Assembly (NCBI GenBank): GCA_937625935.1
Contig: OW569373.1
Coordinates: forward strand, 372,001-436,000
DNA length: 64,000 nucleotides
Source: Tetramitus jugosus
Taxonomy: Eukaryota; Protista; Heterolobosea
Reading direction: 5' to 3'
Of the stretch, positions 1 to 24,900 are shown piece after piece. The position numbers and the translations under genes are program-made. A model generated the notes under the pieces. The model was not told the origin of the DNA. It did not search any database and saw only the letters and a list, made by a program, of their open reading frames with translations. Position 1 is the stretch's first letter, and the number at the start of each line of letters is the position of its first letter.

Positions 1-3000
1 TCTTGAGAGCAGTTTCCTCTGCCTGAACAGTAGGAAGTGGAAGGAGCATTTTCTATTTGGCAGTGATCATATTGGCAATTATTTCCATAAGTTCCGTTGA
101 GACAGATACACTCATCAATACCAATACAGTATCCACTTCCTCCACAAACACGTTCATCATCTGGATGCAAGCCATTGCAAGTAACCTCCTCGCAATTGCT
201 TCCGGCATAACCATAATCGCATGAACAAGTATCATGGGCGACACACTGACCATTTCCAGAACACACTGATGAGTCGTTTGATGGAGTTGAGTGGCATGTT
301 GTAATTGAACAGTCCTTTCCTGAATAGAATGGATCGCACTCACACTTATCCACACCAACACATGAACCATGGTCACTGCAAGCTCTGATAGAGTCTGATC
401 TCTTGCCGAAGCAGAGAGGATAAGAACAATCAGCTCCTTGATATCCTGGTGCACAACTGCAAGTGTTAGGACCGTAACATGTTCCACTTCCTGAACAAGC
501 AGCACTATCAGTCGAATTCACTCCAAAACATTGAACAACACTGCAATCTGCTCCAGCAAATCCTGGACGACAGACACAAGTGTCCAGATTGGCACATGAA
601 CCATGTCCGGAGCATACCAGAGGACTTCGTTCATTAATTCCATAACAAGTCTTTGATTCACAGTTGACTCCTGCGAATCCTTCCTCACATTTACATGTAT
701 TGGGTCCAATACAGCTTCCCTTTCCACTACATGCTCCTGCAGTGTTGCTCGCAACTTGGAAGCAAGCCATTTGTTCGCAATTGGAGCCAATAAAACCAGG
801 AGAGCAGACACAAGAATCTTTGCTGGCACACACACCGTTTCCATTACACACGCTAGGATCCGTATTGTTCTTTCCGAAACAGGTTGTGAATTGACATCGA
901 TCACCACTATAACCTGAAGGACACTCACACTTATTGGGAGCAGTACATGAGCCATGGCCTGAACACACAGCACTAGAGGTGCTTGCAAGTCCGTAACAAA
1001 CTGGAAGTGAGCAACTTGCTCCAGTATATTCTGCAGAACATTCACATTTGTTAGGTCCTACACAAGCTCCCTGTCCACTACACACACGTGAATCTGTTGA
1101 ATTCACTCCATAACAAGTTAGTGTTTCGCATTCAGTACCCACATAACCAACGTTACATGAGCATCTATCATGTTGAAGACACGATCCGTGGGAGCTACAC
1201 ACAGACTGATTAAGGTTGTTAATTCCGAAACATGTTGTCTGCTCACATCGATCTCCAAAGTATCCATCTGCACAAGAACATTCATTTGGTGACAGACATG
1301 AACCAACACCACTACAGACAGCAGAACTAGTAGCCACAATACCATAGCATACTGGTTGACTACAATCCTGCGATCCATACCCAGGATTACAACTGCAAGT
1401 ATTTGCACCAACACATGTACCTCGACCATAGCATGCTTCTGGATCAGAAGCATTTAAGCCAAAGCAGTATGGAACACTACAATCAAAGCCATTATAATCT
1501 TGATTACACAGGCAAGAATCTGGTGCGTCACAAACACCATGACCACTGCAAGCTACACTTCCGAACTTACCATAACAAATTGCTGACTGACAATCATTTC
1601 CTGTGTAGCCAAAAGCTGGATCACAAGAGCACTTGTTTGGTGCTGTGCAGTTTCCACGGGTATTACATACCTCATTATTGTCATGAGCAATACCGTTACA
1701 AAGGATCAACTCACACTCATCACCATCGTATCCAGATCTGCAAGCACAAGTATCTGGCGCATTGCAAGTTCCTCTTGAGGAACATACCGTTGGATCTGTG
1801 TTGTTCTTTCCATAACACTCAGTTAGTTCACAATTCTTTCCAGAGTATTGAGGAAGACACTGACAGACATCTGGAGCAACACATGTTCCTCGTCCGGAGC
1901 AAACATTGGTATCTCCACTCGTCTTACCAAAACATATTGGAAGTTCACAAGTCAATCCTTTGTATCCATCGGTACAAGAACAAATATCTGTTGCAACACA
2001 CTGTCCTTTTCCACTACAGACTTCTGGATCAGTGAAATTGTAACCTCCACAAGTTCTAGCTTGTCCACAGAATCTTCCCTCGTGACCAACTTCGCACTGG
2101 CAGATATCTTCCTTGATGCAAACTCCATGTCCAGCACAGACACTTGGATCAGTAAATACTAGTCCACCACATGATCGAGCAGCACCACAGCAGGAACCGC
2201 CAAAACCTGGTTGACATGTGCAAGTATTTGGTCCTACACAAGATCCATGACCAGAACACAGTTGTGGATCATTGCTTGTCAGATTGAAGCATACATTAAG
2301 TTCACAATTCAAACCTGAGTACCCAGGCATGCAGGAACAGTTGTCTTCCTGTATACAGCTTCCATGAGAAGCACATACAGAATGATTATTAAAAGCTATT
2401 TCACCACATGTTCTGATGATTTCACAGTTGGAACCAGAGAAACCTTCTGCACACGAACAGGTATCAACGGATAAACAAGAACCCTTGCCACTGCACACTT
2501 GAGGATCTGATTCTTCCAGACCGTGGCAGGTAGAAATTTCACAACGTGACCCAACGTGTCCCGTTGTACAATTGCAGACGTCAGGAGAAGTACATACACC
2601 ATTCCCGGAGCAAACCAAAGGATCGGATGTGTGTTGATTTTGACATATCAATTCTTCACATTGTTCCTTTCCATAACCGTGATGGCATTGACAAATTCCA
2701 TCAACACAAAGACCGTTACCTGAACATACAGAAGGACTGCTTGCTGAAACATTGTAGCATTCACCATTAGAACAGTCTGAACCAATGTAACCAAAAGAGC
2801 ATACACAAGTATCTTGGGAGACACATGATCCTTTTCCAGAACAAACATTGGAACTATTTGCTAGTGTGCCAAAACATGACAGCTGTTGCTCACAATTGAC
2901 ACCTGTGAAAGGAGATGAGCAAGAACAATGATCCAAGCCTACACAAGCACCCTTGCCAGAACATACTGAATGATCATTGAATGCGACTCCATTACATGTT

Positions 3001-6000
3001 CTTGCAATATTACAGGAAGATCCTGAATACCCATCGAAACATGTGCAAGAATCGGTAGAGTTACAAAAACCGTTACCGTTACATGAAGCAGTGGAATTCA
3101 AGCAGTTGTATGTGTATACACCTGACACTGATCTCGGTCTGACCTTCATTATCACAGAAGGAATTGAATAGAGGTTCGTTCCAAATCCTGACCAGATGAC
3201 ACCATTAGTGACACCAGTGTATGTTCCATTCTTGTAAGCTCCATTGAGATTGGAGTAAACATTTCCACTGCTGCTCCACCACCAACCAGCACCATAATAG
3301 TTGGCCATATGTTGATAAGAATATCCATCGTTGTCGGCATCCGTGGTACTGAATAATGCTCCGTTGTGGGCAGTTAAACCGTCTTTTGGATTGAATGACC
3401 CTTCATACGTGTATCCACTGATAGTCAATTTGTATTTCGTGGTTTGAGCACCGACGGCGAAAGTACGATAGTCAGCACTATACCAATTACCTTTGTATAA
3501 CATATTCACTCTTAATTGAGACGGAACATTTTGTGTGATGTCGAACAACTTTTCGTTTCCGAGCCAGTGAGAGCTGGACAAGTCACCAAATCCATCTCTG
3601 TAGTTGTTCCATACTTGATTGAAACCGAAGCAACTACTCACTGGTTCTCTCCTTTGAATGACAGTCCAACCGGAATTGCCGTTTGTATCTCTATCGTCCA
3701 TGTCGCAGTATACTTGATATGGAACAGCATTTCGGGAAGGATTGATCCAGTATACTCCTGAGGGCAATGACATATTTGCTCGCTGTATATCGAAACAAGT
3801 GAGACCAGGGTAAGTTCGATCTGTTCCGAGTGAAATAGATCTCTCACACCAAGCACCCGCGTTTCCAGGTACGCACGAGCAGGAATCCTGTCCCGAACAT
3901 TGTCCCTTTCCGGAGCAAACACTTGTTGATTGAGCGGATTTTCCATTACAAGTTCTACTTTCATGATCTGAACAATCAGTGCCATTGAATCCTGGATAAC
4001 AAACGCATTTATCCTTGTATCCAGAGATAAATTGAGCAGACACATTGTCCAGATATTGATCACAATCACCATTACCACTACAGCTGACTGTAGAGTTCTT
4101 GCAATTAATAGAACGAGGTCTAATCTTCATCACTGTGTATGGCATCGAGTATGAAGCTGTGTTCTTCAATGCTGGCCAAATGATACCATTGGTGATGCCA
4201 GTGTATGTTCCATTCTTGTAAGCTCCATTGAGATTGGAATAAACATTTCCACTGCTGCTCCACCACCAACCAGCACCATAATAGTTGGCCATATGTTGAT
4301 AAGAGAAACCATCATAGTCTCTATCGATAGTACTGAAGTACGCACCATTCTGATTTCCGAGACTATCTTTTGGATTCATTCCGTCTTGATTGTTTCCACA
4401 TACATCTAACTGAGGGTGCACAGAGTCCAAACCGAGAGGATTGACGGTCGAAATCAAACCGCTACCAATCCAATAATTCGAATCATAAGAGAAACCATTG
4501 ACCGTTAGTGCGTAGAGACTAGCTTCACTGGCTACTGCAAATCCTGCGTAATTTGCTTTGTACAGTTGTGAATCGTAAAGCATGTCGATACGCAAGCTCA
4601 TTGAAGATGTAGTTGTCATTTGATACACCTTATCATTACCCAACCAGTGAGAGATACTCACATCACCAAATCCGTCTCTGTAATTGACCCAATTTTGATT
4701 GAAGTTGTAGCAAGAAGAAGATGGCTCTCTCCTTTGAATGACAGTCCATCCAGCATTGCCGAACAAATCCTTATCATCCATGTCGCAATAAACTTGGAAT
4801 GCACCACCAGTCACATTCTTTGGATTGATCCAGTAGATGCCAGATGGCAGTGTGCGGTTAGATCTATGAATTTGGAAGCAGTGGGAAGCGGCGAACAATT
4901 TATCTGTTCCCAGCTGTAGTTTTGTCTGACAGACGTTTCCACCGTATCCCAAATTGCAAGCGCAGATATTTTGGCCGACACATTGCCCATTGCCCGAACA
5001 CACATTTGGGTCGCTGGATTGAAGACCTCCACACATTCTATTAACATTATCAGCACAGTTGGCTCCTATGAAACCAGGATCACAAACACAAACATCTCTC
5101 CACGATGAAATGTAATCACCAGTCAAAGATTGTAAGTAATAGTCGCAGTCTCCATTTCCTGAACAAGACACAGTTCTGTTCTTGCAAGTGTATGATGTTG
5201 GTCGAACCTTCATGGATACATATGTAGGAGAATAGTTCAATGTTCCTTCCAAAGCTTGCCATGAGATACCGTTCGAGACACCAGCATATGTTCCATTCTT
5301 GTAAGCGCCGTTCATATTTAAGTAAACATTTCCACTGCTGCTCCACCACCAACCAGCACCATAATAGTTGGCCATATGTTGATAAGAATATCCATCGTTG
5401 TCGGCATCCGTGGTACTGAATAATGACCCAGAAGATGATGAGAAGGAGTCCTTAGGATTCCAACCATCTACAAGAGCACCACAAGCATTCAACTCAGGAT
5501 GAACTGAGTCTAAAGATAATGGATTGGTTGAGATATGATATCCATTTCCAGTCCAATATTGTTGATCGTAGCTGTAACCACCAATTGTCAACTTGAATTT
5601 GCTTGCCTCATTACCCAAAGAGAAGGTGTCGTAATTGGCATTGTACAATCTTCCTTTGTAATTCATATCGACGCGCAATTGCATTTTTGCGCGGTCTGCT
5701 GTTGTTAAACTATAAATGTATGCATTACCTAACCAGAAGGATGAATTGAGTGCCCCAAAGCCATCTCTATAGTTCACCCAATTTTGATTGAAGTTGTAGC
5801 AAGAAGAAGATGGCTCTCTCCTTTGAATGACAGTCCATCCAGCATTGCCGAACAAATCCTTGTCATCCATGTCGCAATAAACTTGGAATGCACCACCAGT
5901 CACATTCTTTGGATTGATCCAGTACACTCCTGATGAGAGTGTGCGATTTGATCTGTGGATTTGGAAACAATCGAAACCAGGGAATGTACGATCTCCTCCC

Positions 6001-9000
6001 AAGACAAGGCGCACTTCGCAGTAAAGTCCACCATATCCTTTTTCGCATCTGCATGTATCTTGAGCAATACAAGTGCCATGTCCATTACAAACACAAGTAC
6101 TGTTGGCAGCAACACCATCACATGTTCGATACTTTCGATCGGCACAGTTTGGACCAAAGTATCCAGCTTCTTCGTCACAAATGCACATGTCTCTCCACTT
6201 AGTCAAGTAGTTAGGACTTATCCAGTCGGCTAAGGTATCACAATCACCATGACCACTGCAACTGAATGTTGAGTTCTTGCAATTGAATGAACGAGGTCTA
6301 ATCTTCATCACTGTGTATGGCATCGAGTATGAAGCTGTGTTCTTCAATGCTGGCCAAATGATACCGTTGGTGACACCAGTGTATGTTCCATTTTTAAAAG
6401 CTCCATTGAGATTGGCGTAAACATTTCCACTGCTGCTCCACCACCAACCCGAGCCGTAATATTCTGCCATCTGTTGATAAGAATAGCCATCATTATCTGC
6501 ATCTCTTGTACTAAACAATGATCCAGTGTTAGCACCAAATCCATCGTTGGGACTTAATCCATCAATAACACCTCCACATGAGTCAAGCTGTTGATGAATC
6601 TGTTTGTCCTTATTGATTGGATTTGTGGCAGCGTAATATCCACTTCCGACCCAATACTGTCTGTCATAACTGAAGCCTCCAAGGGTGAGACCATATTTGG
6701 CCGCTTCACTATTCACCACAAAAGTATAGTAATTTGCCTTGTATGAATCTGATCCGTAAGTCATATCGACTCTCAACTCCATTCCAGCAGTAGTAGTGGT
6801 CAATAGATTAATTTGTCTGTTTCCTAACCAGTGAGAAGTTTTCAACGAACCAAAGCCATTTCTAAAACTAACCCAAGGTTGATTGAAGTTGTAGCAAGAA
6901 GAAGATGGCTCTCTTCTTTGAATGACAGTCCATCCAGCATTACCAGAAGAATCTACATCGTCCATGTCACAGTACACCTGGAATGCAGTAGAATTATTTG
7001 GATTGACCCAATACACTCCAGATGGAAGTGTTCTGTCTGAACGATGAATATGGAAACAGTGCTCTCCGGGGAAAATGGGATCTGTTCCGAGCTTTAGTTT
7101 CTTTTCACAGGCCTTACCTCCATATCCAACATTACACAAACATCTTTCATGGGCAACACACTTTCCTTTGGAGGAACAAACATTTGGATGACTTGCCGCT
7201 AGTCCATTGCATGACCTCTGATAGTTGTCAGAACAATCAGCCCCAAAGAAACCGAGATCACAAACACAGATATCACGGAAAGAAGAAATTTCCCCTGGTG
7301 TAACAAGAGTAGAATATCTGTCGCAATCTCCATATCCACTGCAAGACATTGTTCTGTTCTTACAAGAGTAAGTATTACGCCTAATCTTCATGACAGAGAA
7401 TGTTGATGAAGTCGAGAAACTTGGCCACATGATGCTATCTGTTTTGTAAGTACCGTTCCTGTAGATCCCATTCAAGTTGGAAGACAGAACACCACTGCTC
7501 ATCCACCACCAACCAGCGCCATAGTAATTTGCCATATTCTGATAAGAGTATCCATCATTGTCCTGGTCGGTTGTACTGAACAATGCTCCATTGTGAACAC
7601 CAAAGCCATCTGTTGGATCCATACCATTCAAATTAACACCACATTGGTCCATTTTTGGATAGATAGAATCCAGCTTCATAGGATTACTTGCAATGGTGTA
7701 GCCAGCAGATGTCCAATACAATGTATCGTAACTGTAACCGCTGACCTTCAAACGATATTTAGTAGCGGCAGGATCGACTGAAAATTGAGCATAGTTGGCC
7801 TTGTACAGCTTCTTGCCGAACTCCAAGTCCATTCTGAGCTCATGGGGAGCCATGTTAGTCAAACTGGAAACCTGTTCATTACCTAACCAGAAGGATGTTT
7901 CTAATGAACCGAAGCCATCTCTGTAGTTCACCCAATTCTGATTAAAATTGAAACAAGAAGTTTCTGGTTCTCTTCTTTGGATAACTGTCCAACCAGCATA
8001 ACCATTTTGATCCTTGTCATCCATGTCACAGAACACCCTAATAACGCCAGTGATGTTGGAAGGACGAACATAGTAGACACCTGAAGCTAATGCAGGATTT
8101 GCTCGATGGATCTGGAAACAATCAGTACCTGGGAAAGTTGGATCAGTTCCCAGTTCGATCATTTTCTCACATCTCTTTCCTGCTGCTCCCAGTTTACATT
8201 TACAAGTGTCTTGAGCTACACAGGTGCCTCTTGCGGAGCAAACATACTTGTTGTTGGCCGCGTATCCATAGCAAGAACGATCTACTCTATCAGAACAATC
8301 AGCGCCAAAATAACCTGCCTCACATGTACAAGTATCAGTCCAGGTAGTTGTGGTTTGTGGAGTAACAGATGTGTCATAGGAATCACAAGATCCGTGACCA
8401 CTGCAACTGACTGTAGAATTCTTGCATTTGTATGAACGTGGTCGAATCTTCATCACGACATCATTCATAGAATAACTATTGTCGGAATTCCAGACAATAC
8501 CGTTAGTAACGCCAGTGTATGTTCCATTCTTGAAAACACCATTGAGATTGGCATAAACATTTCCACTGCTGCTCCACCACCAACCAGCTCCATAGTAACT
8601 TGCCATGTTTTGATAAGAATAACCGTCATTGTCCCTGTCGTACGTGCTGAACATCGCACTATTATGGGCAGAGAAGCCATCTTTTGGATCAGTACCATCA
8701 CGAACAGCTCCACACTTGTCCAACTGCTGGTGAATCTGATTATCTAGATTCAATGGGTTCGTAGAGATGTAGTATCCATTACCTGCCCAGTAGACAGTAT
8801 CATATGAATAGCCAGATGTCGTCAGTTTGTACAAAGTTGCTTGACTTCCGACAGAAAATACATTGTAATTTGCCTTGTAGGCAACACCACGACGAATCAT
8901 GTCGACTCTCAGTTCAAACGAATCTGAACTGGTAATTGAATAAATATTTTCATTACCAAGCCAATGGGATGTGTTCAAGCTACCAAAACCGACCCTGTAG

Positions 9001-10508
9001 GAATTCCAATGTTGGTTAAAATCGAAACAAGCTGTTGAAGGCTCTCTTCTTTGAATGACAGTCCATCCAGCATTGCCGAACAAATCCTTGTCATCCATGT
9101 CGCAATAAACTTGGAATGCACCACCAGTCACATTCTTTGGATTGATCCAGTAGATGCCAGATGGCAGTGTGCGGTTAGATCTATGAATTTGGAAACAATG
9201 TCTTCCAGGAAAATCGGAAGTAGCACCCAATGTCAATCTGGTTGCACAAAATTGTCCTCCATATCCATAATCACATTTACACTTATCGTAACCAATGCAC
9301 TGCCCATGATTAGCACAAACAGATGAATTTGTGGACAATACTCCATTGCAGGTTCTACCAACATGATCTGAGCAATCAGATCCGAGGAATCCAGCATCAC
9401 AAACACACTGATCCAAGTCATTACAGATACCATGACCAGAACAGGACACAGTTCTATTCTTACAATTGTATGAAGCCAAACGAACTTTCATGGTAACCTC
9501 AGGAATGGAATAAGCAAGAGTGTTCTCTCTACCTACCCATACTATACCATTAGTGACACCAGTGTAAGTTCCATTCTTGTAAGCTCCATTGAGATTGGAG
9601 TAAACATTTCCACTGCTGCTCCACCACCAACCAGCGCCATAGTAACTTGCCATATTTTGGTAAGAGTAACCATCATTATCCTTGTTATAGGTACTGAACA
9701 GAGCATTGTTCTGAACTGAGAAACTGTCTTTTGGATCGAGACCGTCCATCTTTTTACCACAAGAATCCAAAACTGGAATGGTAGAGTCACCTTCAATGTA
9801 ACCTGTCGATGTCCAACACTGATCATCATAGCTATACCCAGAAGTAGTCAACTTGTAGTTGGCAACACTGTCACCCACAAAAAATTGGCGATAATTGGCC
9901 TTGTAACCCACACCCTTGTAAATCATGTGGATTCTCAGCATGTGAGACGCTGATTTTGTCAAGATTGAAATCCTGTCATTACCCAGCCAGTGAGACTTTC
10001 CAATAGCGCCAAATCCAGCGGCATAAGTCGCCCAATCTTGATTAAAATTTTGACTAAAAGTCGATGGTTCTCTCCTCTGAATCAACGTGTAACCAGCATT
10101 GCCAAACTCATCCTTATCATTCATATCACAGTACACTCTGAATGAAGTAGTGGCATTGTTTGGATTGATCCAATAGATACCAGAGGGCAACGAGTAGTTG
10201 GCTCTATGAATATGGAAACATGATTTACCAGCATTGGTAGAGGAAGCACCAAGTGCATTATCGAGATACAATTCACACTGAGATCCACCATAGAATGAAT
10301 TACAGTAACAAACATCAGTGAAGGCGCAGGATCCTCGCCCAGAGCACACCACAGAAGCAGTAGAGTCAATGCCAAAGCATTGAACTTGTTGTGAGAACAC
10401 GACATGAGTGTTCAAATTGATCAACAACAGCAACAACGACAACAACAATAGCAAGAAGCTAGTTCTTGTTGTTGTTGTTTGAGCAAAATTTGTTGTTGTG
10501 AAAGACAT
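1..10508 (-). CDS. Giant secreted/cell-surface protein (at least 3,500 aa, 3' end outside window): signal peptide, EGF, 7 fibrinogen C-terminal (FReD) domains interleaved with EGF modules, then roughly 26 tandem EGF-like repeats
   Basis: ATG at 10508 reads [61 protein letters not shown]...KSCFHIHRANYSLPSGIYWINP...RVYCDM...GYTLIQRRE...NFNQDWATYAAGFG...HWLGND. The same frame at the window edge reads ...YCSGRGNCSQ. The ORF track has no stop-terminated minus ORF in this frame, consistent with one open frame. The GWW..SG..YSNLNG-type motif recurs near 9625, 8575, 7505, 6440, 5345, 4262 and 3278. Confidence 0.9.
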   Translation of the reverse strand, partial: MSFTTTNFAQTTTTRTSFLLLLLSLLLLLINLNTHVVFSQQVQCFGIDSTASVVCSGRGSCAFTDVCYCNSFYGGSQCELYLDNALGASSTNAGKSCFHIHRANYSLPSGIYWINPNNATTSFRVYCDMNDKDEFGNAGYTLIQRREPSTFSQNFNQDWATYAAGFGAIGKSHWLGNDRISILTKSASHMLRIHMIYKGVGYKANYRQFFVGDSVANYKLTTSGYSYDDQCWTSTGYIEGDSTIPVLDSCGKKMDGLDPKDSFSVQNNALFSTYNKDNDGYSYQNMASYYGAGWWWSSSGNVYSNLNGAYKNGTYTGVTNGIVWVGRENTLAYSIPEVTMKVRLASYNCKNRTVSCSGHGICNDLDQCVCDAGFLGSDCSDHVGRTCNGVLSTNSSVCANHGQCIGYDKCKCDYGYGGQFCATRLTLGATSDFPGRHCFQIHRSNRTLPSGIYWINPKNVTGGAFQVYCDMDDKDLFGNAGWTVIQRREPSTACFDFNQHWNSYRVGFGSLNTSHWLGNENIYSITSSDSFELRVDMIRRGVAYKANYNVFSVGSQATLYKLTTSGYSYDTVYWAGNGYYISTNPLNLDNQIHQQLDKCGAVRDGTDPKDGFSAHNSAMFSTYDRDNDGYSYQNMASYYGAGWWWSSSGNVYANLNGVFKNGTYTGVTNGIVWNSDNSYSMNDVVMKIRPRSYKCKNSTVSCSGHGSCDSYDTSVTPQTTTTWTDTCTCEAGYFGADCSDRVDRSCYGYAANNKYVCSARGTCVAQDTCKCKLGAAGKRCEKMIELGTDPTFPGTDCFQIHRANPALASGVYYVRPSNITGVIRVFCDMDDKDQNGYAGWTVIQRREPETSCFNFNQNWVNYRDGFGSLETSFWLGNEQVSSLTNMAPHELRMDLEFGKKLYKANYAQFSVDPAATKYRLKVSGYSYDTLYWTSAGYTIASNPMKLDSIYPKMDQCGVNLNGMDPTDGFGVHNGALFSTTDQDNDGYSYQNMANYYGAGWWWMSSGVLSSNLNGIYRNGTYKTDSIMWPSFSTSSTFSVMKIRRNTYSCKNRTMSCSGYGDCDRYSTLVTPGEISSFRDICVCDLGFFGADCSDNYQRSCNGLAASHPNVCSSKGKCVAHERCLCNVGYGGKACEKKLKLGTDPIFPGEHCFHIHRSDRTLPSGVYWVNPNNSTAFQVYCDMDDVDSSGNAGWTVIQRREPSSSCYNFNQPWVSFRNGFGSLKTSHWLGNRQINLLTTTTAGMELRVDMTYGSDSYKANYYTFVVNSEAAKYGLTLGGFSYDRQYWVGSGYYAATNPINKDKQIHQQLDSCGGVIDGLSPNDGFGANTGSLFSTRDADNDGYSYQQMAEYYGSGWWWSSSGNVYANLNGAFKNGTYTGVTNGIIWPALKNTASYSMPYTVMKIRPRSFNCKNSTFSCSGHGDCDTLADWISPNYLTKWRDMCICDEEAGYFGPNCADRKYRTCDGVAANSTCVCNGHGTCIAQDTCRCEKGYGGLYCEVRLVLGGDRTFPGFDCFQIHRSNRTLSSGVYWINPKNVTGGAFQVYCDMDDKDLFGNAGWTVIQRREPSSSCYNFNQNWVNYRDGFGALNSSFWLGNAYIYSLTTADRAKMQLRVDMNYKGRLYNANYDTFSLGNEASKFKLTIGGYSYDQQYWTGNGYHISTNPLSLDSVHPELNACGALVDGWNPKDSFSSSSGSLFSTTDADNDGYSYQHMANYYGAGWWWSSSGNVYLNMNGAYKNGTYAGVSNGISWQALEGTLNYSPTYVSMKVRPTSYTCKNRTVSCSGNGDCDYYLQSLTGDYISSWRDVCVCDPGFIGANCADNVNRMCGGLQSSDPNVCSGNGQCVGQNICACNLGYGGNVCQTKLQLGTDKLFAASHCFQIHRSNRTLPSGIYWINPKNVTGGAFQVYCDMDDKDLFGNAGWTVIQRREPSSSCYNFNQNWVNYRDGFGDVSISHWLGNDKVYQMTTTSSMSLRIDMLYDSQLYKANYAGFAVASEASLYALTVNGFSYDSNYWIGSGLISTVNPLGLDSVHPQLDVCGNNQDGMNPKDSLGNQNGAYFSTIDRDYDGFSYQHMANYYGAGWWWSSSGNVYSNLNGAYKNGTYTGITNGIIWPALKNTASYSMPYTVMKIRPRSINCKNSTVSCSGNGDCDQYLDNVSAQFISGYKDKCVCYPGFNGTDCSDHESRTCNGKSAQSTSVCSGKGQCSGQDSCSCVPGNAGAWCERSISLGTDRTYPGLTCFDIQRANMSLPSGVYWINPSRNAVPYQVYCDMDDRDTNGNSGWTVIQRREPVSSCFGFNQVWNNYRDGFGDLSSSHWLGNEKLFDITQNVPSQLRVNMLYKGNWYSADYRTFAVGAQTTKYKLTISGYTYEGSFNPKDGLTAHNGALFSTTDADNDGYSYQHMANYYGAGWWWSSSGNVYSNLNGAYKNGTYTGVTNGVIWSGFGTNLYSIPSVIMKVRPRSVSGVYTYNCLNSTASCNGNGFCNSTDSCTCFDGYSGSSCNIARTCNGVAFNDHSVCSGKGACVGLDHCSCSSPFTGVNCEQQLSCFGTLANSSNVCSGKGSCVSQDTCVCSFGYIGSDCSNGECYNVSASSPSVCSGNGLCVDGICQCHHGYGKEQCEELICQNQHTSDPLVCSGNGVCTSPDVCNCTTGHVGSRCEISTCHGLEESDPQVCSGKGSCLSVDTCSCAEGFSGSNCEIIRTCGEIAFNNHSVCASHGSCIQEDNCSCMPGYSGLNCELNVCFNLTSNDPQLCSGHGSCVGPNTCTCQPGFGGSCCGAARSCGGLVFTDPSVCAGHGVCIKEDICQCEVGHEGRFCGQARTCGGYNFTDPEVCSGKGQCVATDICSCTDGYKGLTCELPICFGKTSGDTNVCSGRGTCVAPDVCQCLPQYSGKNCELTECYGKNNTDPTVCSSRGTCNAPDTCACRSGYDGDECELILCNGIAHDNNEVCNTRGNCTAPNKCSCDPAFGYTGNDCQSAICYGKFGSVACSGHGVCDAPDSCLCNQDYNGFDCSVPYCFGLNASDPEACYGRGTCVGANTCSCNPGYGSQDCSQPVCYGIVATSSAVCSGVGSCLSPNECSCADGYFGDRCEQTTCFGINNLNQSVCSSHGSCLQHDRCSCNVGYVGTECETLTCYGVNSTDSRVCSGQGACVGPNKCECSAEYTGASCSLPVCYGLASTSSAVCSGHGSCTAPNKCECPSGYSGDRCQFTTCFGKNNTDPSVCNGNGVCASKDSCVCSPGFIGSNCEQMACFQVASNTAGACSGKGSCIGPNTCKCEEGFAGVNCESKTCYGINERSPLVCSGHGSCANLDTCVCRPGFAGADCSVVQCFGVNSTDSAACSGSGTCYGPNTCSCAPGYQGADCSYPLCFGKRSDSIRACSDHGSCVGVDKCECDPFYSGKDCSITTCHSTPSNDSSVCSGNGQCVAHDTCSCDYGYAGSNCEEVTCNGLHPDDERVCGGSGYCIGIDECICLNGTYGNNCQYDHCQIENAPSTSYCSGRGNCSQ

Positions 10509-11475
10509 AGCTCAATGTATGTAGTAAGTATATCAAAAATGTTATGAGCTATGCAAAAAAATAATTTGAGTATGTATGACGTGAAATCACTAGCTAGCTT
10601 CTCTGTTGGAACCTTTGTTGTTTTTTCAAAAATGTTGGTTGGTAGCACTGTGAGAAGGTAGTGGATGTTGGTTGAGTGTGCTGCACTTTTGTTGAGGGTC
10701 CGTGACTCAACCAGCGGGTAGGTGTCTATCTGTTGGTGCGAAACGGTATACAGCGATGGAGTTTTGGCCTGTTCCGGGACAATGGCAAGCGTCAAATGTC
10801 GTTGGAGTATTGATTGGAATATTTGCAGAAGGATAAGCTCAACCCCCCTATGAGCTCGCTCACCACTTACTTAAGGCGAAGTAACGATGCATGCGTCAAT
10901 TTCAAGCGACATCGCGTTATCCCAACGGGATGCATGATATATATCTGATAGATTCGATATTAATGTGGTCAAATGGTCGGTGTTTTACTTGAAGAAAAAT
11001 CGCGCCTTTTGTGGGTTTGCACTTCAACGAGCGGGAAGAAGTGCGAGATCTCGCTCAACGGCCGGACGGAATACATCAGTGATCCAGCAACAACTCAGAA
11101 TTTGAGCAGAAACTTTCAAGAAAGGCTAGGGAATTCGATCGTTATTTGATGCTGAGGATTTCAAGTGTCGTGTACCAACATTATTGGGGATTTGACATGC
11201 CACACACAAAATGGTTTATTCTGCTGCTCCATGATACTCTTCGCCTGAAATCCTGTTCAATTCTCTTTCCCCTTGTACTAATTAGTATGTGGTGATGACT
11301 TCATTGGTGGTTTATAGTGGCGACGCAGTCAACTTCCCTTCTTGAAAATCTGACCATAACTACGGTGAGAGGGACGCGAGTAACAATGGCTTATAAAAGA
11401 AGTCGAGAAGTCATTCATTGTTTTAGAACACTCTTTTACTCTTTCTAGAATTGAAGTATGATACATTTGTTCATC

Positions 11476-14400
11476 TTATGCAGATAATTCTGCGTCACTT
11501 CGTTTGACTTGGCTTGCTTTTCTCTGAACCACTTTGTAACCGACGATTGAACCAAGTATCAGACAAAGAACCAAGAGCACAAGAACAGATAAGCATGCCA
11601 GAACAATGAGAACGATTGCCCAAACAGGAAGACCAGTTTGTTTCTTGGTTTGAGTATCACCACAACCACAAGGATTTGTGCAAGCAACTGCACCATCATC
11701 AGAAACAGCATCTCCAGAGTCTGATTGAACATAGTCGAGAGAAACTGCATGAGCAACTGGTTTGGTGCAAGAACATGTCACAACTCTCTTTCCATTCGGA
11801 AGAGTCACGCCAGAATTGGTTGAACTGGTTCCTGTGGAACAAACAGATGTATCATTTTGCCATGTTCTCGTATTGTTGTCAAAGAATTTGCACACATAGA
11901 TGAATGATGTGTTTCCTTGATTCAAATTCTCATTCACTCCCATTGAACTTGTCACAACTGGTGTTGGGTACTGGTCGAACACTTCTCCAGAGTTCTCACT
12001 GAACACTCGAACTGCAACGACAGGGGACACGAGCTTTGTATTGCACAGACTAGAGTATTGTTGTGGAGGAGATTGATAGATTTCTCCCTGGGCATAAAAT
12101 GAGGCATCATCTTGCAAGTTGTCCAATATTGGCGATGTACTTAGATTCACCACTACTTGCTCTGATTGGCCTGTGTTTGGAACAGTAACATCCAGATCAA
12201 CTACAAGGTCCTCAGTTCTGTTAATTCTTATAGCCACAATCTCCACAGTTTCTATCGATAACTGAAGCGATTCACCTTCCAACAAATTTTCCCTCAATCT
12301 CCGAGTCACAGAGTCAATCAAAAGAGATGCTGATTCAATTTGATTAGTCGAGCTATTGGAGTTGGTCATAATTGGAACAATATTTTTCACTGCAGTGACA
12401 GCTTGGTCAAGAATTGACTGGTCACCAACGTGCTCATCCAACAATCCAGACAAAATACCACTTGTAGTTATGGAAGTTTGTTGTGAGAAGTATTGTGAGA
12501 GACCAGAAAGAGTTGAGATCAGTTCAATCTGTTGCTCTTTGGGAATAGCATCACTTCTAACCTTAATAACATCAATGATGGAGCTCACGATGTTTGTTGT
12601 TTGGGTCTGGTTCATTGTCGATGCAGATTCAACTACATACGCGGTGACGACTCCGCTTTGAGATGACAGAACAGTTGAATTCACTGTGATAAGTGTCTCA
12701 ACTTGGGTGAGGATCAATTCATTCAACTCAGCAGGAACTTGTTTGGTCACGTTAACACTTACAAAATTGGAGGTTGCTGTATCTCCTGATTCAGCCTTTG
12801 CGTGTGCAAACAGTTGGAGAGTTCCAGTCACAGGCATTACGACACTCAAGCTTGGAACAGATGAGAATGAGTTCAACATTGTATCAATCCCGTTCCTTCG
12901 ATATCCAAATCTATACAGTATGTACTTGGAGTTATCGTTAGCTGTCCACCCGTAGGTATTAAAAGAAAATTTATCTGTCAACACGACCCCACTACTGTTA
13001 CTCATAGCCAAAATACCTCCAACTGGTGGAGCACTAACTGTGAATCGAATCGTTTTTGATATGGAGTTATAAATGGTCCTTCCCATAACACTAGAATTGT
13101 CAAAGTAAACAGACAGCTCATATTGCTCACCAGGTGAAAAAGAATTTGGTCTGAAAGATATTGTTCGCATGGTGGAGGTCACTCTATCATTGAGGATCTC
13201 GTCGATATTGAGAACATGACCACTTTGATCCTTGATACTCCAGGACAAACGATAGCTCGAAGCTAGCTCTATTGGTTGGAAATAGGCTGTTGCTTGGAGG
13301 GAATTTGAACGCACAAAGAATCCTGCATCATTCAAATTGATCTTAATATCAATTGTGAGTCTAATTTCGCATTTCTTGCCGTCATATCCAGAGTTACATC
13401 GACAGAAGTCGGGTGATAAACACTTTCCTTGAGAGCTGCAAACAGAAGAATCATTGGCGAGCAAAGAAAAACACTCTGTCACAGTACAATTGTATCCATG
13501 ATATCCACTTCGGCACTTACACTGATCATTGACACAGCTGCCGTGTCCATCACAAACTGATGGAAGTGGAATTGATGGATGGCTACAAGTGACAACTCCA
13601 CAAGTTCCTCCCGCGTAACCTGTATTACAGCTGCACTGATCGTAGGCAACACATCGTCCATGAGAGCTACAGACAGAATAACTAGAAGCTATTACTCCAC
13701 TGCATGTTGGTGTGCATTGAGGTTGCGCATAACCTGATGGACAGTTACAAGTGTCTTCTTTGACACACTGCCCAAAACCACCACAAACACCTTGCTCCTC
13801 TCTATCAATGGAGTAACATGAGAAACTGTTCCTAATGGTTCCGAAGAACAGCTTTTTCCCTCTTTGTTGATCTCCTCTCTGATCTTCAAATTCGGCTCCA
13901 TGATCTCCAAGGGTACCGAATACCTTCACAATACTTGATACTGGATTGATTGACAAACCAAAAGTGACTCCAAAATCAAATTCTCCACTAATCAACCTCA
14001 CAACAGGTGGTTGACCAAGTATGTGCTTTGCCACATATATCATTGGTTTTCCGCTATTCACATCTTTGATAGGAACACCCATGTAGTCTCCATTACTCTT
14101 GACTTGTCCTGTGATATAAAATGAATGACCATCCATATCAGCAACCATACTCTGAGGACTTATCGAACCATCCGCCTGGGCAATTGTTTCATGTCCAAAA
14201 CTACTAAGATCCGCTGAAGCTTCCAATAAGAAGGTGGTCATTGTATCAGGTTTTCCAAACGAAATTGGATCAAAGAAAGCCTCGTCTGTCACATAACCGG
14301 TCAAAAATAGCTTTCCTTCAAGGAGAACCACTCCTCTGACATCGTCATCACTTGCACTACCACCAGTGATGAACTTGTTCCAGCTAAGTTTATCATTAAT

Positions 14401-15312
14401 AAATTGGAACGAAGCTAAGAATATATCTTTGCTTCCATAAGAATGCTGTGTGACACCTGTCAATGATAATTCATCGATGAATGATCCTACGAGATAAAAT
14501 GCATTAGAAGTGTCATCTATTACCAATGAAGCTGCAGAAACAAGATAATCTGAATGATAGATAAGGTAGTCCAATATTTCTCCATCTCTATCTATCCTCA
14601 ATATGAACATGGCAAATGTATCTTCCTTTTGAGTAACGTCAGATAGTTGCTCGTCATTTCGGTGCCACATTACATAACCCCTTACATCTCCAATCAGTAT
14701 CATGGATGAATCTCTCTTGGTGTCCAGAACCAATTGACGCACTTGAAGATAACCAGGGGATAAACTTGAATACAAAGAGTCAAACCACATGACAGAGCCA
14801 TCCTCAACTTTCATTTTCATCACAAAACCATTGTGAGTATGACTTTGGCCAAACACCGTGTCATCCAACGTAAAATTGTAGTGGAAACTACCTGATACGA
14901 GCAAGGACAATGCATCATCCATTGTCATTCCCGTGACCTGGAATTGATTATTGAACATCTGGGAGTCAACCATACTGATTAACTTGGTCCATATCACCTT
15001 TTTCTCATCTTCAGAGAGGCAAACAATGAAGGAATATTCTTGGGTTGTAAGTGATAAACTTGACGCGTCAATTATCATATCTACTCCATCCAAATCACGC
15101 CCTAAATCGATCCTGTCCCCTGTAGCCTTTCCTGCCAAAAAAGTGAACTTGGAGTCACTTGAAGCAACCGAGAAATAGGAATGTGAGTAATAAGAGTCCT
15201 CACTTGGATAACCAATCTTTGCATGTGTAACAAAGAGTTCTTCACAGAGGGCAAAGGTCACTGTAAACAGCAAGAACAACAGCAATGTTGCAATCAATCG
15301 AGTATGGATCAT
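11476..15312 (-). CDS. Type I membrane protein: signal peptide, beta-propeller-like region, EGF repeats, REJ domain, GAIN/GPS-like region, single TM (polycystin-1-like ectodomain)
   Basis: N-terminal hydrophobic signal; EGF repeats (CSSHGRC, CSSQGKC); REJ-like PPVGG...SGVVLTDKFSF...GW...LYRFGY; GPS-like CKFFDNNTRTW...C...VTCSC; TM WAIVLIVLACLSVLVLLVLCLILGSIVGY followed by a short basic tail. Confidence 0.8.
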   Translation of the reverse strand: MIHTRLIATLLLFLLFTVTFALCEELFVTHAKIGYPSEDSYYSHSYFSVASSDSKFTFLAGKATGDRIDLGRDLDGVDMIIDASSLSLTTQEYSFIVCLSEDEKKVIWTKLISMVDSQMFNNQFQVTGMTMDDALSLLVSGSFHYNFTLDDTVFGQSHTHNGFVMKMKVEDGSVMWFDSLYSSLSPGYLQVRQLVLDTKRDSSMILIGDVRGYVMWHRNDEQLSDVTQKEDTFAMFILRIDRDGEILDYLIYHSDYLVSAASLVIDDTSNAFYLVGSFIDELSLTGVTQHSYGSKDIFLASFQFINDKLSWNKFITGGSASDDDVRGVVLLEGKLFLTGYVTDEAFFDPISFGKPDTMTTFLLEASADLSSFGHETIAQADGSISPQSMVADMDGHSFYITGQVKSNGDYMGVPIKDVNSGKPMIYVAKHILGQPPVVRLISGEFDFGVTFGLSINPVSSIVKVFGTLGDHGAEFEDQRGDQQRGKKLFFGTIRNSFSCYSIDREEQGVCGGFGQCVKEDTCNCPSGYAQPQCTPTCSGVIASSYSVCSSHGRCVAYDQCSCNTGYAGGTCGVVTCSHPSIPLPSVCDGHGSCVNDQCKCRSGYHGYNCTVTECFSLLANDSSVCSSQGKCLSPDFCRCNSGYDGKKCEIRLTIDIKINLNDAGFFVRSNSLQATAYFQPIELASSYRLSWSIKDQSGHVLNIDEILNDRVTSTMRTISFRPNSFSPGEQYELSVYFDNSSVMGRTIYNSISKTIRFTVSAPPVGGILAMSNSSGVVLTDKFSFNTYGWTANDNSKYILYRFGYRRNGIDTMLNSFSSVPSLSVVMPVTGTLQLFAHAKAESGDTATSNFVSVNVTKQVPAELNELILTQVETLITVNSTVLSSQSGVVTAYVVESASTMNQTQTTNIVSSIIDVIKVRSDAIPKEQQIELISTLSGLSQYFSQQTSITTSGILSGLLDEHVGDQSILDQAVTAVKNIVPIMTNSNSSTNQIESASLLIDSVTRRLRENLLEGESLQLSIETVEIVAIRINRTEDLVVDLDVTVPNTGQSEQVVVNLSTSPILDNLQDDASFYAQGEIYQSPPQQYSSLCNTKLVSPVVAVRVFSENSGEVFDQYPTPVVTSSMGVNENLNQGNTSFIYVCKFFDNNTRTWQNDTSVCSTGTSSTNSGVTLPNGKRVVTCSCTKPVAHAVSLDYVQSDSGDAVSDDGAVACTNPCGCGDTQTKKQTGLPVWAIVLIVLACLSVLVLLVLCLILGSIVGYKVVQRKASQVKRSDAELSA

Positions 15313-21916: not shown

Positions 21917-24900
21917 TCAATGGTCTTTGATGATGGCACTTTCAGGCTGAGGGCTTGCAACATTGGTTGGACTAGGTGATTTGATAAACTCCTCGAATAC
22001 CTTCTTGAGGGCATCGACGTTGATTGGCTTTGAAATATAGCCATCCATTCCATTTTCGAGACACTTTTCTCTGTAGCCTTGAATGGCGTGAGCTGTCAAT
22101 GCAATGATTGGCGTGTGTCTGTTCATTGGTTTCTCCAACTCTCTAATCTGGGATGTGGCTTCGAAACCACCCATTTCAGGCATTTGAACGTCCATGAGAA
22201 TGAGATCATATTGTTGTTGTCTTGCTGCGGCAACAGCCTCGACACCATTCTGAGCCAATGTCACTCGATAACCAAACTTTGTTTCCAACAGTTTGATGGC
22301 AACCTTTTGATTAATGACGTTGTCTTCAGCAAGCAAAACTTGAACATTGTGTCTTCTTTCAATGAACATATTCGAGTCATGCTCAGACTTCTTTTGTTCC
22401 TGAGGACGGTTATGATTGAATACCTTGAACAGTGCATCCATCAATTCAGATCTACTAATTGGCTTATTCATGAAGTGAGAGATGGATAAATGAGAGTATA
22501 CCTCTACGATGGCTCTGTGAGTTGTCGTGGACAGCATCATGATGATACTTGGCTTCTTGACCGTGTGAGGCAACTTTTTAATTCTCTGAGCCACAGTAAA
22601 ACCGTCAATGTTTGGCATTTGAGCATCCAAGAGCACACAGTCATATGGCTTCTTGTTCTCAATTTGTCTCTCAATCATTGTGACAGCTGCATCACCATCG
22701 TTGACAACATCGGACTGAATCTTCCAATATGTCAATAGTTGTTTCAAGACGTGGCAGCAAGTTGGATTGTCATCCACAATGAGTACTCTTCTGTTGGACA
22801 TGCTGCTCACATCTGGACTATTTTGATTCTTGTCCAGTCCAAACACGGCTGTGAAATAGAAGACGCTTCCCTTGCCTTGTGTGCTTCTTGCCTGCAACTT
22901 ACCCTTCATCAATTCAACGAGTCGAGTAGAGATTGTCAGACCCAAACCTATTATTATTGTAATGAACAGAGATGTTAGAATCATGATGAAGGAACAATAC
23001 ATAAAAAACAGTTATAAGCTTACCTGTACCACCAAACTTTCTCGTAATACTGCCATCGGCTTGTGAGAAGGCTTCGAAAATGACCAAAAGTTTGTCCTCT
23101 GGAATACCAATACCAGTATCGGATACTTCAAAGTACAATTGAACGGATTCAGAGGTAATGGATTCTGTTCTGACCTTGAGAACCACTTCTCCCTGGAATG
23201 TAAACTTGACAGCGTTGCCAATCAAATTGGTAATGACCTGACGCAGACGGATTGGATCACCAATCAGCTTGTCTGGAATGGTTGGATCAATATCGGCAAT
23301 CAGTTCAATATCCTTCTCATCGGCACGTAAGGCAAGTGCCTTGAGTGTATCACCCAGTGTGTCTCTCAATGGGAGTTCAATGTGTTCGATTTCGAGTTTT
23401 CCGGCTTCAATCTTGGAGAAATCGAGAATGTCATTGATAATGGTCATCAGAGCTTGAGAAGAGGAGTGAACAGCCTTTAGATAGTCTCTTGTTTCGCTAC
23501 GCATCTCAGTGTCGAGAGCCAATTCTGTCATACCAATAATACCGTTCATAGGAGTTCTAATTTCGTGAGACATGTTGGCCATAAACTCACTCTTTGCTCT
23601 GTTGGCTTCCGTAGCCAGCGTCTTCTTGATCAACATATCTTTCAATGTGTAAATCATTTCGTTAATGATTGTCTTCAGCGTGTCCATCTCACCATAAGCC
23701 TCAACAGCAATGTATCGAGTAAAATCACCCTTGGTGACAGCAGTGGCCACCTCGGCGATAGCTCTCACCTGACCTGTCAAATTTCGAGCCATCGTGTTCA
23801 CATTATCAGTCAAATCTTTCCAAATTCCATCAACACCCTTGACAACAGCTTGACCACCAAGCTTACCCTCAGTTCCTACTTCGCGAGCCACTCTTGTTAC
23901 TTCTGATGCGAATGAGTTCAATTGAATCACCATCGTGTTAATCGTATTCTTCAATTCCAAGATTTCTCCTTGTACGTTGGCAGTAATCTTCTTGGATAAA
24001 TCACCCTTGGCAACAGCAGTCGTCACCTGTGCAATTTCTCTCACTTGACCGGTCAAATTGGCAGCCATCGTGTTGACATTATCAGTAAGATCTTTCCAGG
24101 TTCCATCAACGCCGGGCACTAAGGCTTGGCCACCCAATTTTCCTTGGGTACCGACTTCGAGAGCCACTCTTGTTACTTCTGAAGCAAAGGAGTTCAATTG
24201 GTCAACCATAGTATTGATGGTGTTCTTCAACTCCAAGATTTCACCCTTAACATCTGCTGTCATAGTCTTGGATAAATCACCTCGAGCTACAGCGGTCGTC
24301 ACTTCAGCAATTTCTCTGACCTGACCCGTCAAATTGGCAGCCATAATATTCACATTGTCCGTCAGATCCTTCCATGTACCGTCAACTCCAGGCACTTGCG
24401 CCTGACCACCCAGTTTTCCTTGAGTACCGACTTCGAGAGCCACTCTCGTTACTTCATTGGCGAATGAATTCAACTGATCCACCATCGTGTTAATCGTGTT
24501 CTTCAATTCCAAAATCTCACCCTTCACGTCCGCAGTCATCTTCTTTGATAAATCACCACGAGCAACAGCAGTTGTAACCTCAGCAATGGCACGCACTTGG
24601 CCCGTCAAATTGGCAGCCATAGTGTTCACATTATCCGTCAAATCCTTCCAAGTTCCACCAACACCAGCAACCTGGGCTTGACCACCCAGTTTACCCTCAG
24701 TACCGACTTCTCTGGCCACTCTTGTCACTTCACTCGCAAAGGAGTTCAATTGATCAACCATGATATTGATAGTGTTCTTAAGTTCGAGAATTTCACCCTT
24801 GACATCAGCCGTAATCTTCTTTGACAAGTCACCCTTGGCGACAGCGGTAGTGACTTGAGCAATTTCTCTGACTTGGCCTGTCAAGTTAGCAGCCATAATG

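Follow-up and report, generated by a model that had tools for sequence, protein, structure and literature searches.

The 64,000-nucleotide window analysed here (C30:372001-436000, on a 473-kb contig of a 26.35-Mb assembly in 56 contigs) begins inside a giant minus-strand gene, A, whose product carries seven fibrinogen-related domains (FReDs) at the membrane-distal end of a long stalk of EGF modules. Three relatives are referred to throughout: B, a paralogue of A located on contig C10; N, the gene that adjoins A; and P0001, a protein of metagenomic origin.

The gene and its product

From an ATG at window position 10508, the minus-strand frame of A (residues 1-3502; window 1..10508) runs through 3,502 codons to the window edge without a stop, compared with 106 and 261 stops in the other two minus frames of the same stretch. 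It extends past the window start for another 957-958 codons or so (C30:369129-372000, i.e. L007:7129-10000, minus strand), up to a stop codon at C30:369126-369128 (L007:7126-7128). The full-length product is therefore 4,460 residues long and is encoded by a single exon, an open reading frame (ORF) of about 13.4 kb with no in-frame stop across its 4,460 codons. The first-pass annotation of the window had rightly noticed a long intact frame, but its figure of at least 3,500 residues needs correction. The gene was missing from the program-made ORF list because the lister skips ORFs that run off the window. For the Pfam searches, A was split into two pieces (window:1-10508:- and L007:7129-9999:-), one codon being divided by the window edge.

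Contigs from two soil RNA libraries (X1 and X9) tile window positions 4900-10680 at 99-100% identity, with no intron-like joint in this interval. Joints do occur in short-read contigs, and they link equivalent positions of different FReD copies, which identifies them as repeat collapse. Introns or split transcripts were rejected on these grounds: the frame is free of stops and the RNA-library contigs show no intron-like joint. The X1 and X9 contigs end 125-172 nt upstream of the ATG and those of the 'organism A' runs (library type not on record) go on upstream, which suggests a transcript with a short 5' untranslated region, contigs of such libraries not being proof of one.

The protein consists, in order, of a signal peptide, one EGF module, seven FReDs spaced by EGF pairs, 35 EGF modules, a REJ domain, a GAIN-fold domain, a transmembrane (TM) helix and a tail. 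Only two segments are hydrophobic: the signal peptide (start codon and residues 1-40; 10389..10508, minus strand, as for all window coordinates of A), with a core at about residues 18-31 that reaches 2.26 on the Kyte-Doolittle scale in a 19-residue window, and the TM helix at about residues 4408-4438, which is followed by the 22-residue tail. The N-terminal EGF module (residues 44-78; 10275..10379) was recognized by its six-cysteine pattern and by Pfam EGF families.

FReD boundaries were set by motif anchoring. FReD 1 covers residues 94-343 (9480..10229; 142 bits against PF00147) and has a short form of the insert described below, as seen in the alignment; FReD 2, with an insert of about 35 residues, covers residues 435-689 (8442..9206; 152 bits), FReD 3 residues 794-1043 (7380..8129; 149 bits), FReD 4 residues 1148-1404 (6297..7067; 143 bits), FReD 5, the copy that we modelled, residues 1511-1769 (5202..5978; 146 bits), and FReD 6 residues 1874-2130 (4119..4889; 150 bits). 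FReD 7 (residues 2235-2457; 3138..3806; 165 bits) is the sole copy without an insert and the most canonical one. All these scores are far above the cut-off of 22 bits, and the copies match the family over its full length (profile positions 3-221). Searched as a whole, the window part of A yields seven Fibrinogen_C stretches totalling 966 bits (profile positions 14-221 of 221), and the other Pfam matches of this part are EGF_Teneurin, EGF_2, EGF_TEN and weak COLFI matches on the first 45 residues or so of each FReD.

Each inter-FReD linker contains 12 cysteines (13 in one case), as befits two EGF modules, the first of each pair bearing a long loop. The stalk is made of tenascin/teneurin-type EGF modules recognized by a six-cysteine regular expression and by Pfam: the first 26 lie in the window (residues 2469-3502; 1..3104) and the array runs on to residue 3835 outside it. 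In total, A has 48 EGF modules (one after the signal peptide, the linker pairs and 35 in the stalk). As an EGF module is roughly 2-3 nm long, the stalk alone would span on the order of 70-100 nm. The first-pass annotation had already drawn the window part of this layout (a signal peptide, seven FReDs separated by EGF modules, and about 26 further EGF repeats that place the binding domains at the N-terminal end of a long stalk), and it proved accurate throughout: the stalk repeats inside the window number exactly 26, profile searches recover the seven Fibrinogen_C domains and the EGF families, and the FReD positions agree to within about 7 bases with those set by motif anchoring. A is a real and intact gene with one exon, carried by a heterolobosean-like, free-living amoeba, and its product is a type I membrane glycoprotein.

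The assignment of the seven domains to the FReD family is borne out by phmmer and by a fold model as well as by Pfam. In phmmer searches, the FReDs of A matched angiopoietins, ficolins, FIBCD1, fibrinogen gamma, tachylectin 5A (TL5A) and tenascins with E-values of 1e-32 to 1e-22. FReD 7 can be aligned over its full length with human angiopoietin-1 (2.6e-32), and likewise with ficolins, FIBCD1, fibrinogen gamma and beta, TL5A, MFAP4 and tenascins. The AlphaFold2 model of FReD 5 (predicted local distance difference test (pLDDT) 83, predicted TM-score 0.83) displays the three-subdomain (A, B, P) fold of the family; Foldseek superimposes it on ANGPTL2, FIBCD1 and TL5A with TM-scores of 0.90-0.92 and root-mean-square deviations of 1.5-2.1 Å, and the TM-scores range from 0.88 to 0.92 when tenascin and ficolin heads are included in the set. 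Cysteine C35 of the A subdomain is invariant among the aligned FReDs and the WW core is kept. The Ca2+-loop residues D191, D193 and D195 (D-x-D-x-D before the P loop) are conserved in 90% or more of the 61 FReDs aligned, every copy of A among them. An insert of about 35 residues separates the B and P subdomains in copies 1-6; copy 7 lacks it in all three proteins, A, B and the P0001 of a second species. As judged from the alignments and the model, the domains of A are genuine but derived FReDs, which have lost one defining feature, the P-subdomain disulfide, and kept the others.

Membrane anchor, paralogues and evolution of the array

The part of A that lies beyond the window (about 957-958 residues) contains further EGF modules and a Pfam REJ match (PF02010; 49.4 bits for a cut-off of 25, profile positions 238-420 of 452). 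We modelled the anchor, i.e. the last 620 residues of A, with AlphaFold2 from an alignment of 12 paralogous anchors. The model (pLDDT 78) comprises two beta-sandwich domains, a helical bundle (residues 202-350 of the anchor), a beta-sandwich (residues 357-535) whose last strand bears a conserved GPS-like motif, and the TM helix (residues 570-608). Its top Foldseek matches in the PDB are the GAIN domains of BAI3, BAI2, CELSR1 and latrophilins (E-values from 1e-9 to 4e-8). The layout of a GAIN domain, a helical subdomain A followed by a beta-sandwich subdomain B ahead of the first TM helix, is found in the anchor of A. The GPS-like motif, C-x-C-x2-P-V-x-H-A/T-V-S-L-D-Y, is conserved in all 12 paralogues with a valine at position +1. 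The cleavage site H-L-T/S/C of the GPS is absent, and A gives no match to Pfam GPS. Since cleavable GPS motifs have Thr, Ser or Cys where A has this valine, canonical autoproteolysis is not expected, and the anchor of A reads, on the strength of the model, as a GAIN-fold domain that is not autoproteolysed. No 7TM or 11TM region follows the GPS-like motif, only the single TM helix and the 22-residue tail. The continuation into REJ, GPS and TM elements that had been anticipated beyond the window is present there, as a REJ domain, a GAIN-fold domain with a GPS-like motif and a TM helix.

Gene N (11476..15312, minus strand) encodes a protein of 1,278 residues with an N-terminal domain, four EGF modules, REJ, a GAIN-like domain and a TM helix, as detected by Pfam and by similarity to the anchor of A. 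Its N-terminal domain, about 490 residues long, has no Pfam match. The last 620 residues of A and the C-terminus of N are 77% identical (synonymous divergence (dS) 0.64; ratio of nonsynonymous to synonymous divergence (dN/dS) 0.26). A 316-nt tract of N (approximately 11656..11973, minus strand) is 100% identical at the DNA level to the part of A that encodes residues 4296-4400, and it spans the GPS-like motif, which indicates recent gene conversion between A and N.

Paralogue B (C10:79565-95908; 5,448 residues) has the same seven FReDs and about 77-85 EGF modules, lacks a TM helix and ends in a cysteine-rich region. A and B are colinear over the first 3,720 residues or so of A, with 78-91% amino-acid identity. 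Both genes are under strong purifying selection: over about 3,700 codons, and at a dS of 0.54-1.0, dN/dS amounts to 0.06-0.10 for the FReD array and 0.10-0.18 for the stalk (0.06-0.18 overall). Each FReD copy of A pairs with the copy of the same rank in B at 86-92% identity, as against 55-69% between the copies of one gene.

A search of 5.8 billion clusters for the architecture, limited to lengths of 1,926-6,128 residues, returned only one protein besides A and B, namely P0001. P0001 (4,955 residues) comes from a 45.6-kb contig of the Joint Genome Institute (JGI) sample 3300062347; its identity over the whole array is 55%, and it belongs to the secreted B type. A scan of metagenome contigs with the FReD6-EGF-FReD7 segment gave one weak match only (44% identity). 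B and P0001 share a cysteine-rich C-terminal domain of about 250 residues, with the motifs C-V-G-K-Y-D-N-D-P-I and P-P-G-N-P-R-N-A, for which no Pfam assignment was seen. P0001 also has a Ser/Pro/Val-rich, mucin-like region of about 900 residues.

The REJ-GAIN-TM anchor is borne by A and by neither B nor P0001. There are at least 18 such modules in the genome, 16 of them in genes other than A and N (on contigs C9, C16, C24, C37, C44, C45 and C51), several in tandem pairs. The similarity of A to B stops at about residues 3720-3745 and its similarity to N starts at about residue 3788. Given that the B type occurs in two species and that the genome holds many anchors, A is best read, from these sequence comparisons, as a chimera in which a rod of B stock (residue 1 to about 3720) was fused to an anchor of N stock. 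It would then be a clear case of a receptor built by joining a secreted lectin-like rod to the REJ-GAIN-TM anchor of a neighbour.

The putative binding loops follow a pattern of their own. The stretch from the Ca2+ loop to NLNG is 84% identical among the copies of A and 89% among those of P0001, but only 59-60% between the two species, whereas outside this stretch the domain stays near 60% identity in each of the three comparisons. Codon identity is likewise higher in the loop (0.70 versus 0.55), and otherwise divergent copies of the A array share exact nucleotide matches of 65-105 nt. These exact patches, together with the raised codon identity, show gene conversion within the array. Within a species, the seven heads are therefore kept alike, and from one species to another they change together.

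On its other side, A faces tail-to-tail an OSCA/TMEM63-family channel gene (RSN1_7TM and PHM7_cyt; C30:365554-369051, i.e. L007:3554-7051, plus strand), beyond which lies a receptor gene with GPS and RGS matches in Pfam (C30:362173-365331, i.e. L007:173-3331, plus strand). A, N, the channel gene and the GPS-RGS gene form a small surface-receptor cluster around a mechanosensitive-type channel.

Host genome and FReD repertoire

The first-pass annotation had taken the host to be a protist rather than an animal, and the genome agrees. The genes that surround A are of protist type (one encodes a hybrid histidine kinase that carries about 31 HAMP units, others a SAPS-domain protein and an Arf-type GTPase), and the genome is intron-poor, with long, intron-less genes. 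The best named matches of its cytosolic HSP90 are those of Willaertia magna (77%), Naegleria fowleri (75%), Acrasis kona (74%) and N. lovaniensis (74%). In a small HSP90 tree, a branch with full support divides Heterolobosea from green plants and the query lies with the former, its nearest neighbours being unnamed metagenome sequences. An animal origin of the contig is excluded. Near-identical DNA is present in soil, groundwater, sediment and hot-spring data sets.

The genome contains 31 PF00147 matches on about 20 contigs. Seven are in A and seven in B; one is in a protein of 920 residues encoded on contig C51, where the FReD is joined to an anchor module like that of A and N (the C51 model ended at the TM helix and matched the anchor query up to residue 601 of 620). 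About 15 others belong to receptors of 2,000-2,500 residues, one of which was scanned and found to contain FReD, EGF, GPS and RGS domains. In a tree of 116 rows, the 21 array copies and the C51 FReD form one clade (97-99 in the Shimodaira-Hasegawa-like approximate likelihood ratio test) and twelve receptor-type FReDs fall in another, the backbone being without resolution. The approximately unbiased test does not reject a single clade for all FReDs of the lineage of A (p = 0.875). These data fit a single origin of FReDs followed by expansion in the lineage of A, and they are compatible both with inheritance and with a transfer, in either direction, between this lineage and animals or bacteria.

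When 1.84 billion representatives were searched exhaustively with phmmer, 9,842 matches came up. The best are invertebrate proteins (amphioxus, echinoderms, hemichordates, molluscs and a priapulid; 37-47% identity), and P0245 and P0302, described below, are among the others. A search of limited sensitivity with the FReD-GPS-7TM-RGS receptor revealed no Naegleria, Willaertia or Acrasis protein with PF00147; the Acrasis match covers the EGF part only. P0245, a bacterial-type protein of 1,812 residues from a JGI metagenome, carries Laminin_G_3, three complete FReDs (560 bits) and DUF6701, and so shows that tandem FReDs exist outside eukaryotes. No close relative came out when the bacterial-type FReD was used for a pattern scan of species-representative genomes of Bacteria and Archaea. 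P0302 (EukProt; 3,103 residues), an amoebozoan transcript model from Phalansterium solitarium with Sushi and EGF modules, contains at least eight repeats of only the N-terminal 55 residues or so of the FReD/COLFI profile, which suggests that the N-terminal subdomain of the FReD circulates on its own in other protists. Finally, a metagenome contig (JGI 3300062347, Ga0606064_0237; L057:7274-18707) carries two 'ficolin' models of 218 and 206 residues directly upstream of a model of 3,228 residues on the same strand. The 206-residue model groups with the C51 FReD in the tree, and the L057 models may represent one mis-split FReD receptor gene of a related organism.

Two further loci of the window deserve mention. 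The group III hybrid histidine kinase gene (21917-32702, minus strand) consists of an ORF of 3,262 residues, with the HAMP units, and of an overlapping ORF of 361 residues in another frame, with two receiver domains and the last part of HATPase_c. The profile match to HATPase_c falls partly in each ORF (positions 1-76 and 74-106), and both are probably one gene that a frameshift, short intron or assembly error has broken somewhere near 22914-23002. An ORF at 61048-62112 (minus strand) combines a DDE_Tnp_4 transposase domain with a helix-turn-helix domain (Harbinger/PIF-like).

Possible functions and comparison with known systems

We consider it probable, by analogy with FReD lectins, that A is a multivalent and presumably Ca2+-dependent binding device that a type I membrane protein holds far from the cell surface. 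The seven near-identical binding loops of a single chain would confer avidity for a repetitive ligand, the likely candidates being surface glycans or acetylated polymers of bacterial prey, of the substratum or of conspecific cells. The secreted B would act as a soluble counterpart, as an agglutinin, an opsonin or a matrix form. Any signal would have to pass through partner proteins, the 22-residue tail having no signalling domain; adhesion or capture is for this reason the likelier primary role of A. As the organism turns up often in data sets from soil and groundwater, A may matter for grazing on bacteria.

Several observations weigh against this proposal. Transcription is supported by assembled metatranscriptome contigs, which can contain DNA. 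The GAIN model was built from a shallow alignment (12 sequences), and with its pLDDT of 78 it reaches TM-scores of only 0.3-0.5 to solved GAIN domains. The P-subdomain disulfide is lost in all 21 copies of A, B and P0001, its cysteines being replaced by Met and Ser, and the residue that follows the position of the second cysteine is a glycine, with two extra residues. In acetyl-binding FReDs such as TL5A and M-ficolin, this residue is a histidine. With the disulfide and the histidine lost and two residues added, the canonical acetyl pocket is altered, and the class of ligand cannot be read from homology. Furthermore, the insert of copies 1-6 is modelled as disordered (pLDDT below 50), and tenascins and angiopoietins use their FReDs to bind proteins rather than sugars.

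A broader proposal, which we put forward tentatively, is that a complete FReD recognition system evolved, or was acquired, outside animals. Its membrane-bound heptavalent arm would be A, its secreted heptavalent arm B, and its third arm the 15 or so FReD-GAIN-7TM-RGS receptors, through which the binding of a ligand might be linked to G-protein signalling. A binding loop that is uniform in the array yet different in the sister species is what one would expect of species-specific recognition of self, kin or mates, or of a system that follows a particular prey surface. If the proposal holds, animals did not invent FReD-based lectin immunity or adhesion, and repeating the heads in tandem is a second route to multivalency beside oligomerization.

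The last point raised against the binding device, protein ligands, is at the heart of the main alternative, which is nonetheless unlikely: A could be a structural adhesion or matrix protein of tenascin type, with FReDs that bind proteins and not glycans, partners located on other cells, in the cyst wall or on B, and a role in a pericellular coat or in cell-cell or cell-substrate adhesion. Indeed, the EGF modules are of the tenascin/teneurin type, tenascins are the best full-length database relatives after the orthologue, and the closest structures include solved FReDs of tenascins and angiopoietins, some of them in complex with protein ligands. The loss of the Cys-Cys pair and of the histidine of the acetyl pocket points in the same direction; the secreted B could be a matrix component, and a species-specific binding loop suits self-recognition. 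Nevertheless, the FReDs of A are N-terminal and not C-terminal, Pfam finds no FN3, heptad assembly domain, collagen or coiled coil in A, and the Ca2+ loop typical of lectin-type FReDs is kept.

More doubtful still is a sensory role, in which A would be a polycystin/suREJ-like subunit that relays binding or tension through its REJ-GAIN region to a partner channel or receptor. Having a REJ and a GAIN-fold domain beside the membrane would suit such a subunit; yet A crosses the membrane only once, its 22-residue tail shows no recognizable domain, and its GPS-like motif lacks the nucleophile for cleavage and exposure of a tethered agonist. The OSCA-family channel gene and the GPS-7TM-RGS receptor gene directly downstream make the channel a possible partner of A, and the same genome joins FReDs to GPS-7TM-RGS receptors; however, gene adjacency is weak evidence in a eukaryote.

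An artefact (animal contamination, assembly collapse of repeats or a decaying pseudogene) can be dismissed even though FReDs are regarded as animal domains (PMC11401434) and short-read contigs do collapse between the repeats: the 473-kb contig of this 26-Mb, 56-contig assembly has protist-type neighbours, the 13.4-kb ORF is free of introns, about 20 contigs carry FReDs, at 31 places in all, dN/dS is 0.06-0.18, the seven copies are only 55-69% identical, which argues against collapse of the array, and B and the second species keep the same seven-domain order, down to the insert-less last copy.

Turning to known systems, a review places FReDs in all metazoan phyla and leaves other eukaryotes unmentioned (PMC11401434), and a full-text literature search found no paper describing FReDs in protists, Heterolobosea or non-metazoans. 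An architecture of seven FReDs spaced by EGF pairs, an EGF stalk and a REJ-GAIN-TM anchor in a non-animal thus appears to be undescribed. One FReD per chain, as the first-pass annotation had it, is the rule in animals but not an absolute one: an amphioxus FGL1-like model reads Sushi-OLF-4 FReD, Anopheles fibrinogen-related proteins (FREPs) have two or three FBG domains (PMC1242226) and P0245 has three FReDs. These chains, with their two to four FReDs, have no EGF spacers, long EGF stalk or REJ-GAIN anchor, and some multi-FReD chains in databases may be merged gene models. With seven per chain, A and B have the largest FReD arrays among the proteins found in our searches.

Membership of A in the ficolins, the tenascins and the adhesion G-protein-coupled receptors was in each case rejected on the features tested. 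With ficolins, FIBCD1, TL5A and invertebrate FREPs, A has in common the domain and its fold (TM-scores 0.88-0.92; E-values 1e-30 to 1e-27), the Ca2+ loop and the aromatic core (GGWW/AGWWW). The use of many heads for avidity is also common to both, as is the coexistence of membrane (FIBCD1) and soluble (ficolin) forms, comparable to A and B. Animal FReD lectins, however, achieve valency by oligomerizing one-FReD chains through collagen or coiled coils, whereas A carries seven heads on one chain. Pfam detects no collagen-like or coiled-coil oligomerization region in A, so that the ficolin/FREP layout is not the one seen here. Further differences are the lack of the P disulfide and of the pocket histidine, the insert of about 35 residues in copies 1-6 and the heterolobosean-like host.

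Tenascins combine, like A, an EGF array of tenascin/teneurin type and a FReD in one long extracellular chain. They have a single C-terminal FReD, FN3 modules and a heptad assembly domain, whereas A has seven N-terminal FReDs and neither of the other two, and is membrane-anchored; moreover, tenascins are limited to chordates (PMC11401434).

By its general plan, A also resembles suREJ1 and polycystin-1, in which lectin-type modules and EGF are likewise set on a REJ region with GPS/GAIN near the membrane. The lectin modules of these proteins are C-type lectins; A has FReDs instead, with Val at +1 and no Pfam GPS match. suREJ1 is a single-pass protein with a short tail, and polycystin-1 has 11 TM helices and a cleavable GPS.

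The closest counterparts of A remain P0001 and B, which have the same layout of seven FReDs and EGF modules with an insert-less seventh copy (55% and 78-91% identity to A, respectively); they end in a cysteine-rich C-terminal domain without a TM helix and are of the secreted type, whereas A is of the membrane type. A and B provide a non-animal system for asking what FReDs bound before or outside animal immunity. They would also be a case, found in nature, of avidity gained by repeating a domain in tandem, in which gene conversion holds the binding loops uniform. In A, a recognition domain thought of as 'animal' would likewise serve a distant protist, related to Naegleria, as a multivalent module of the cell surface.

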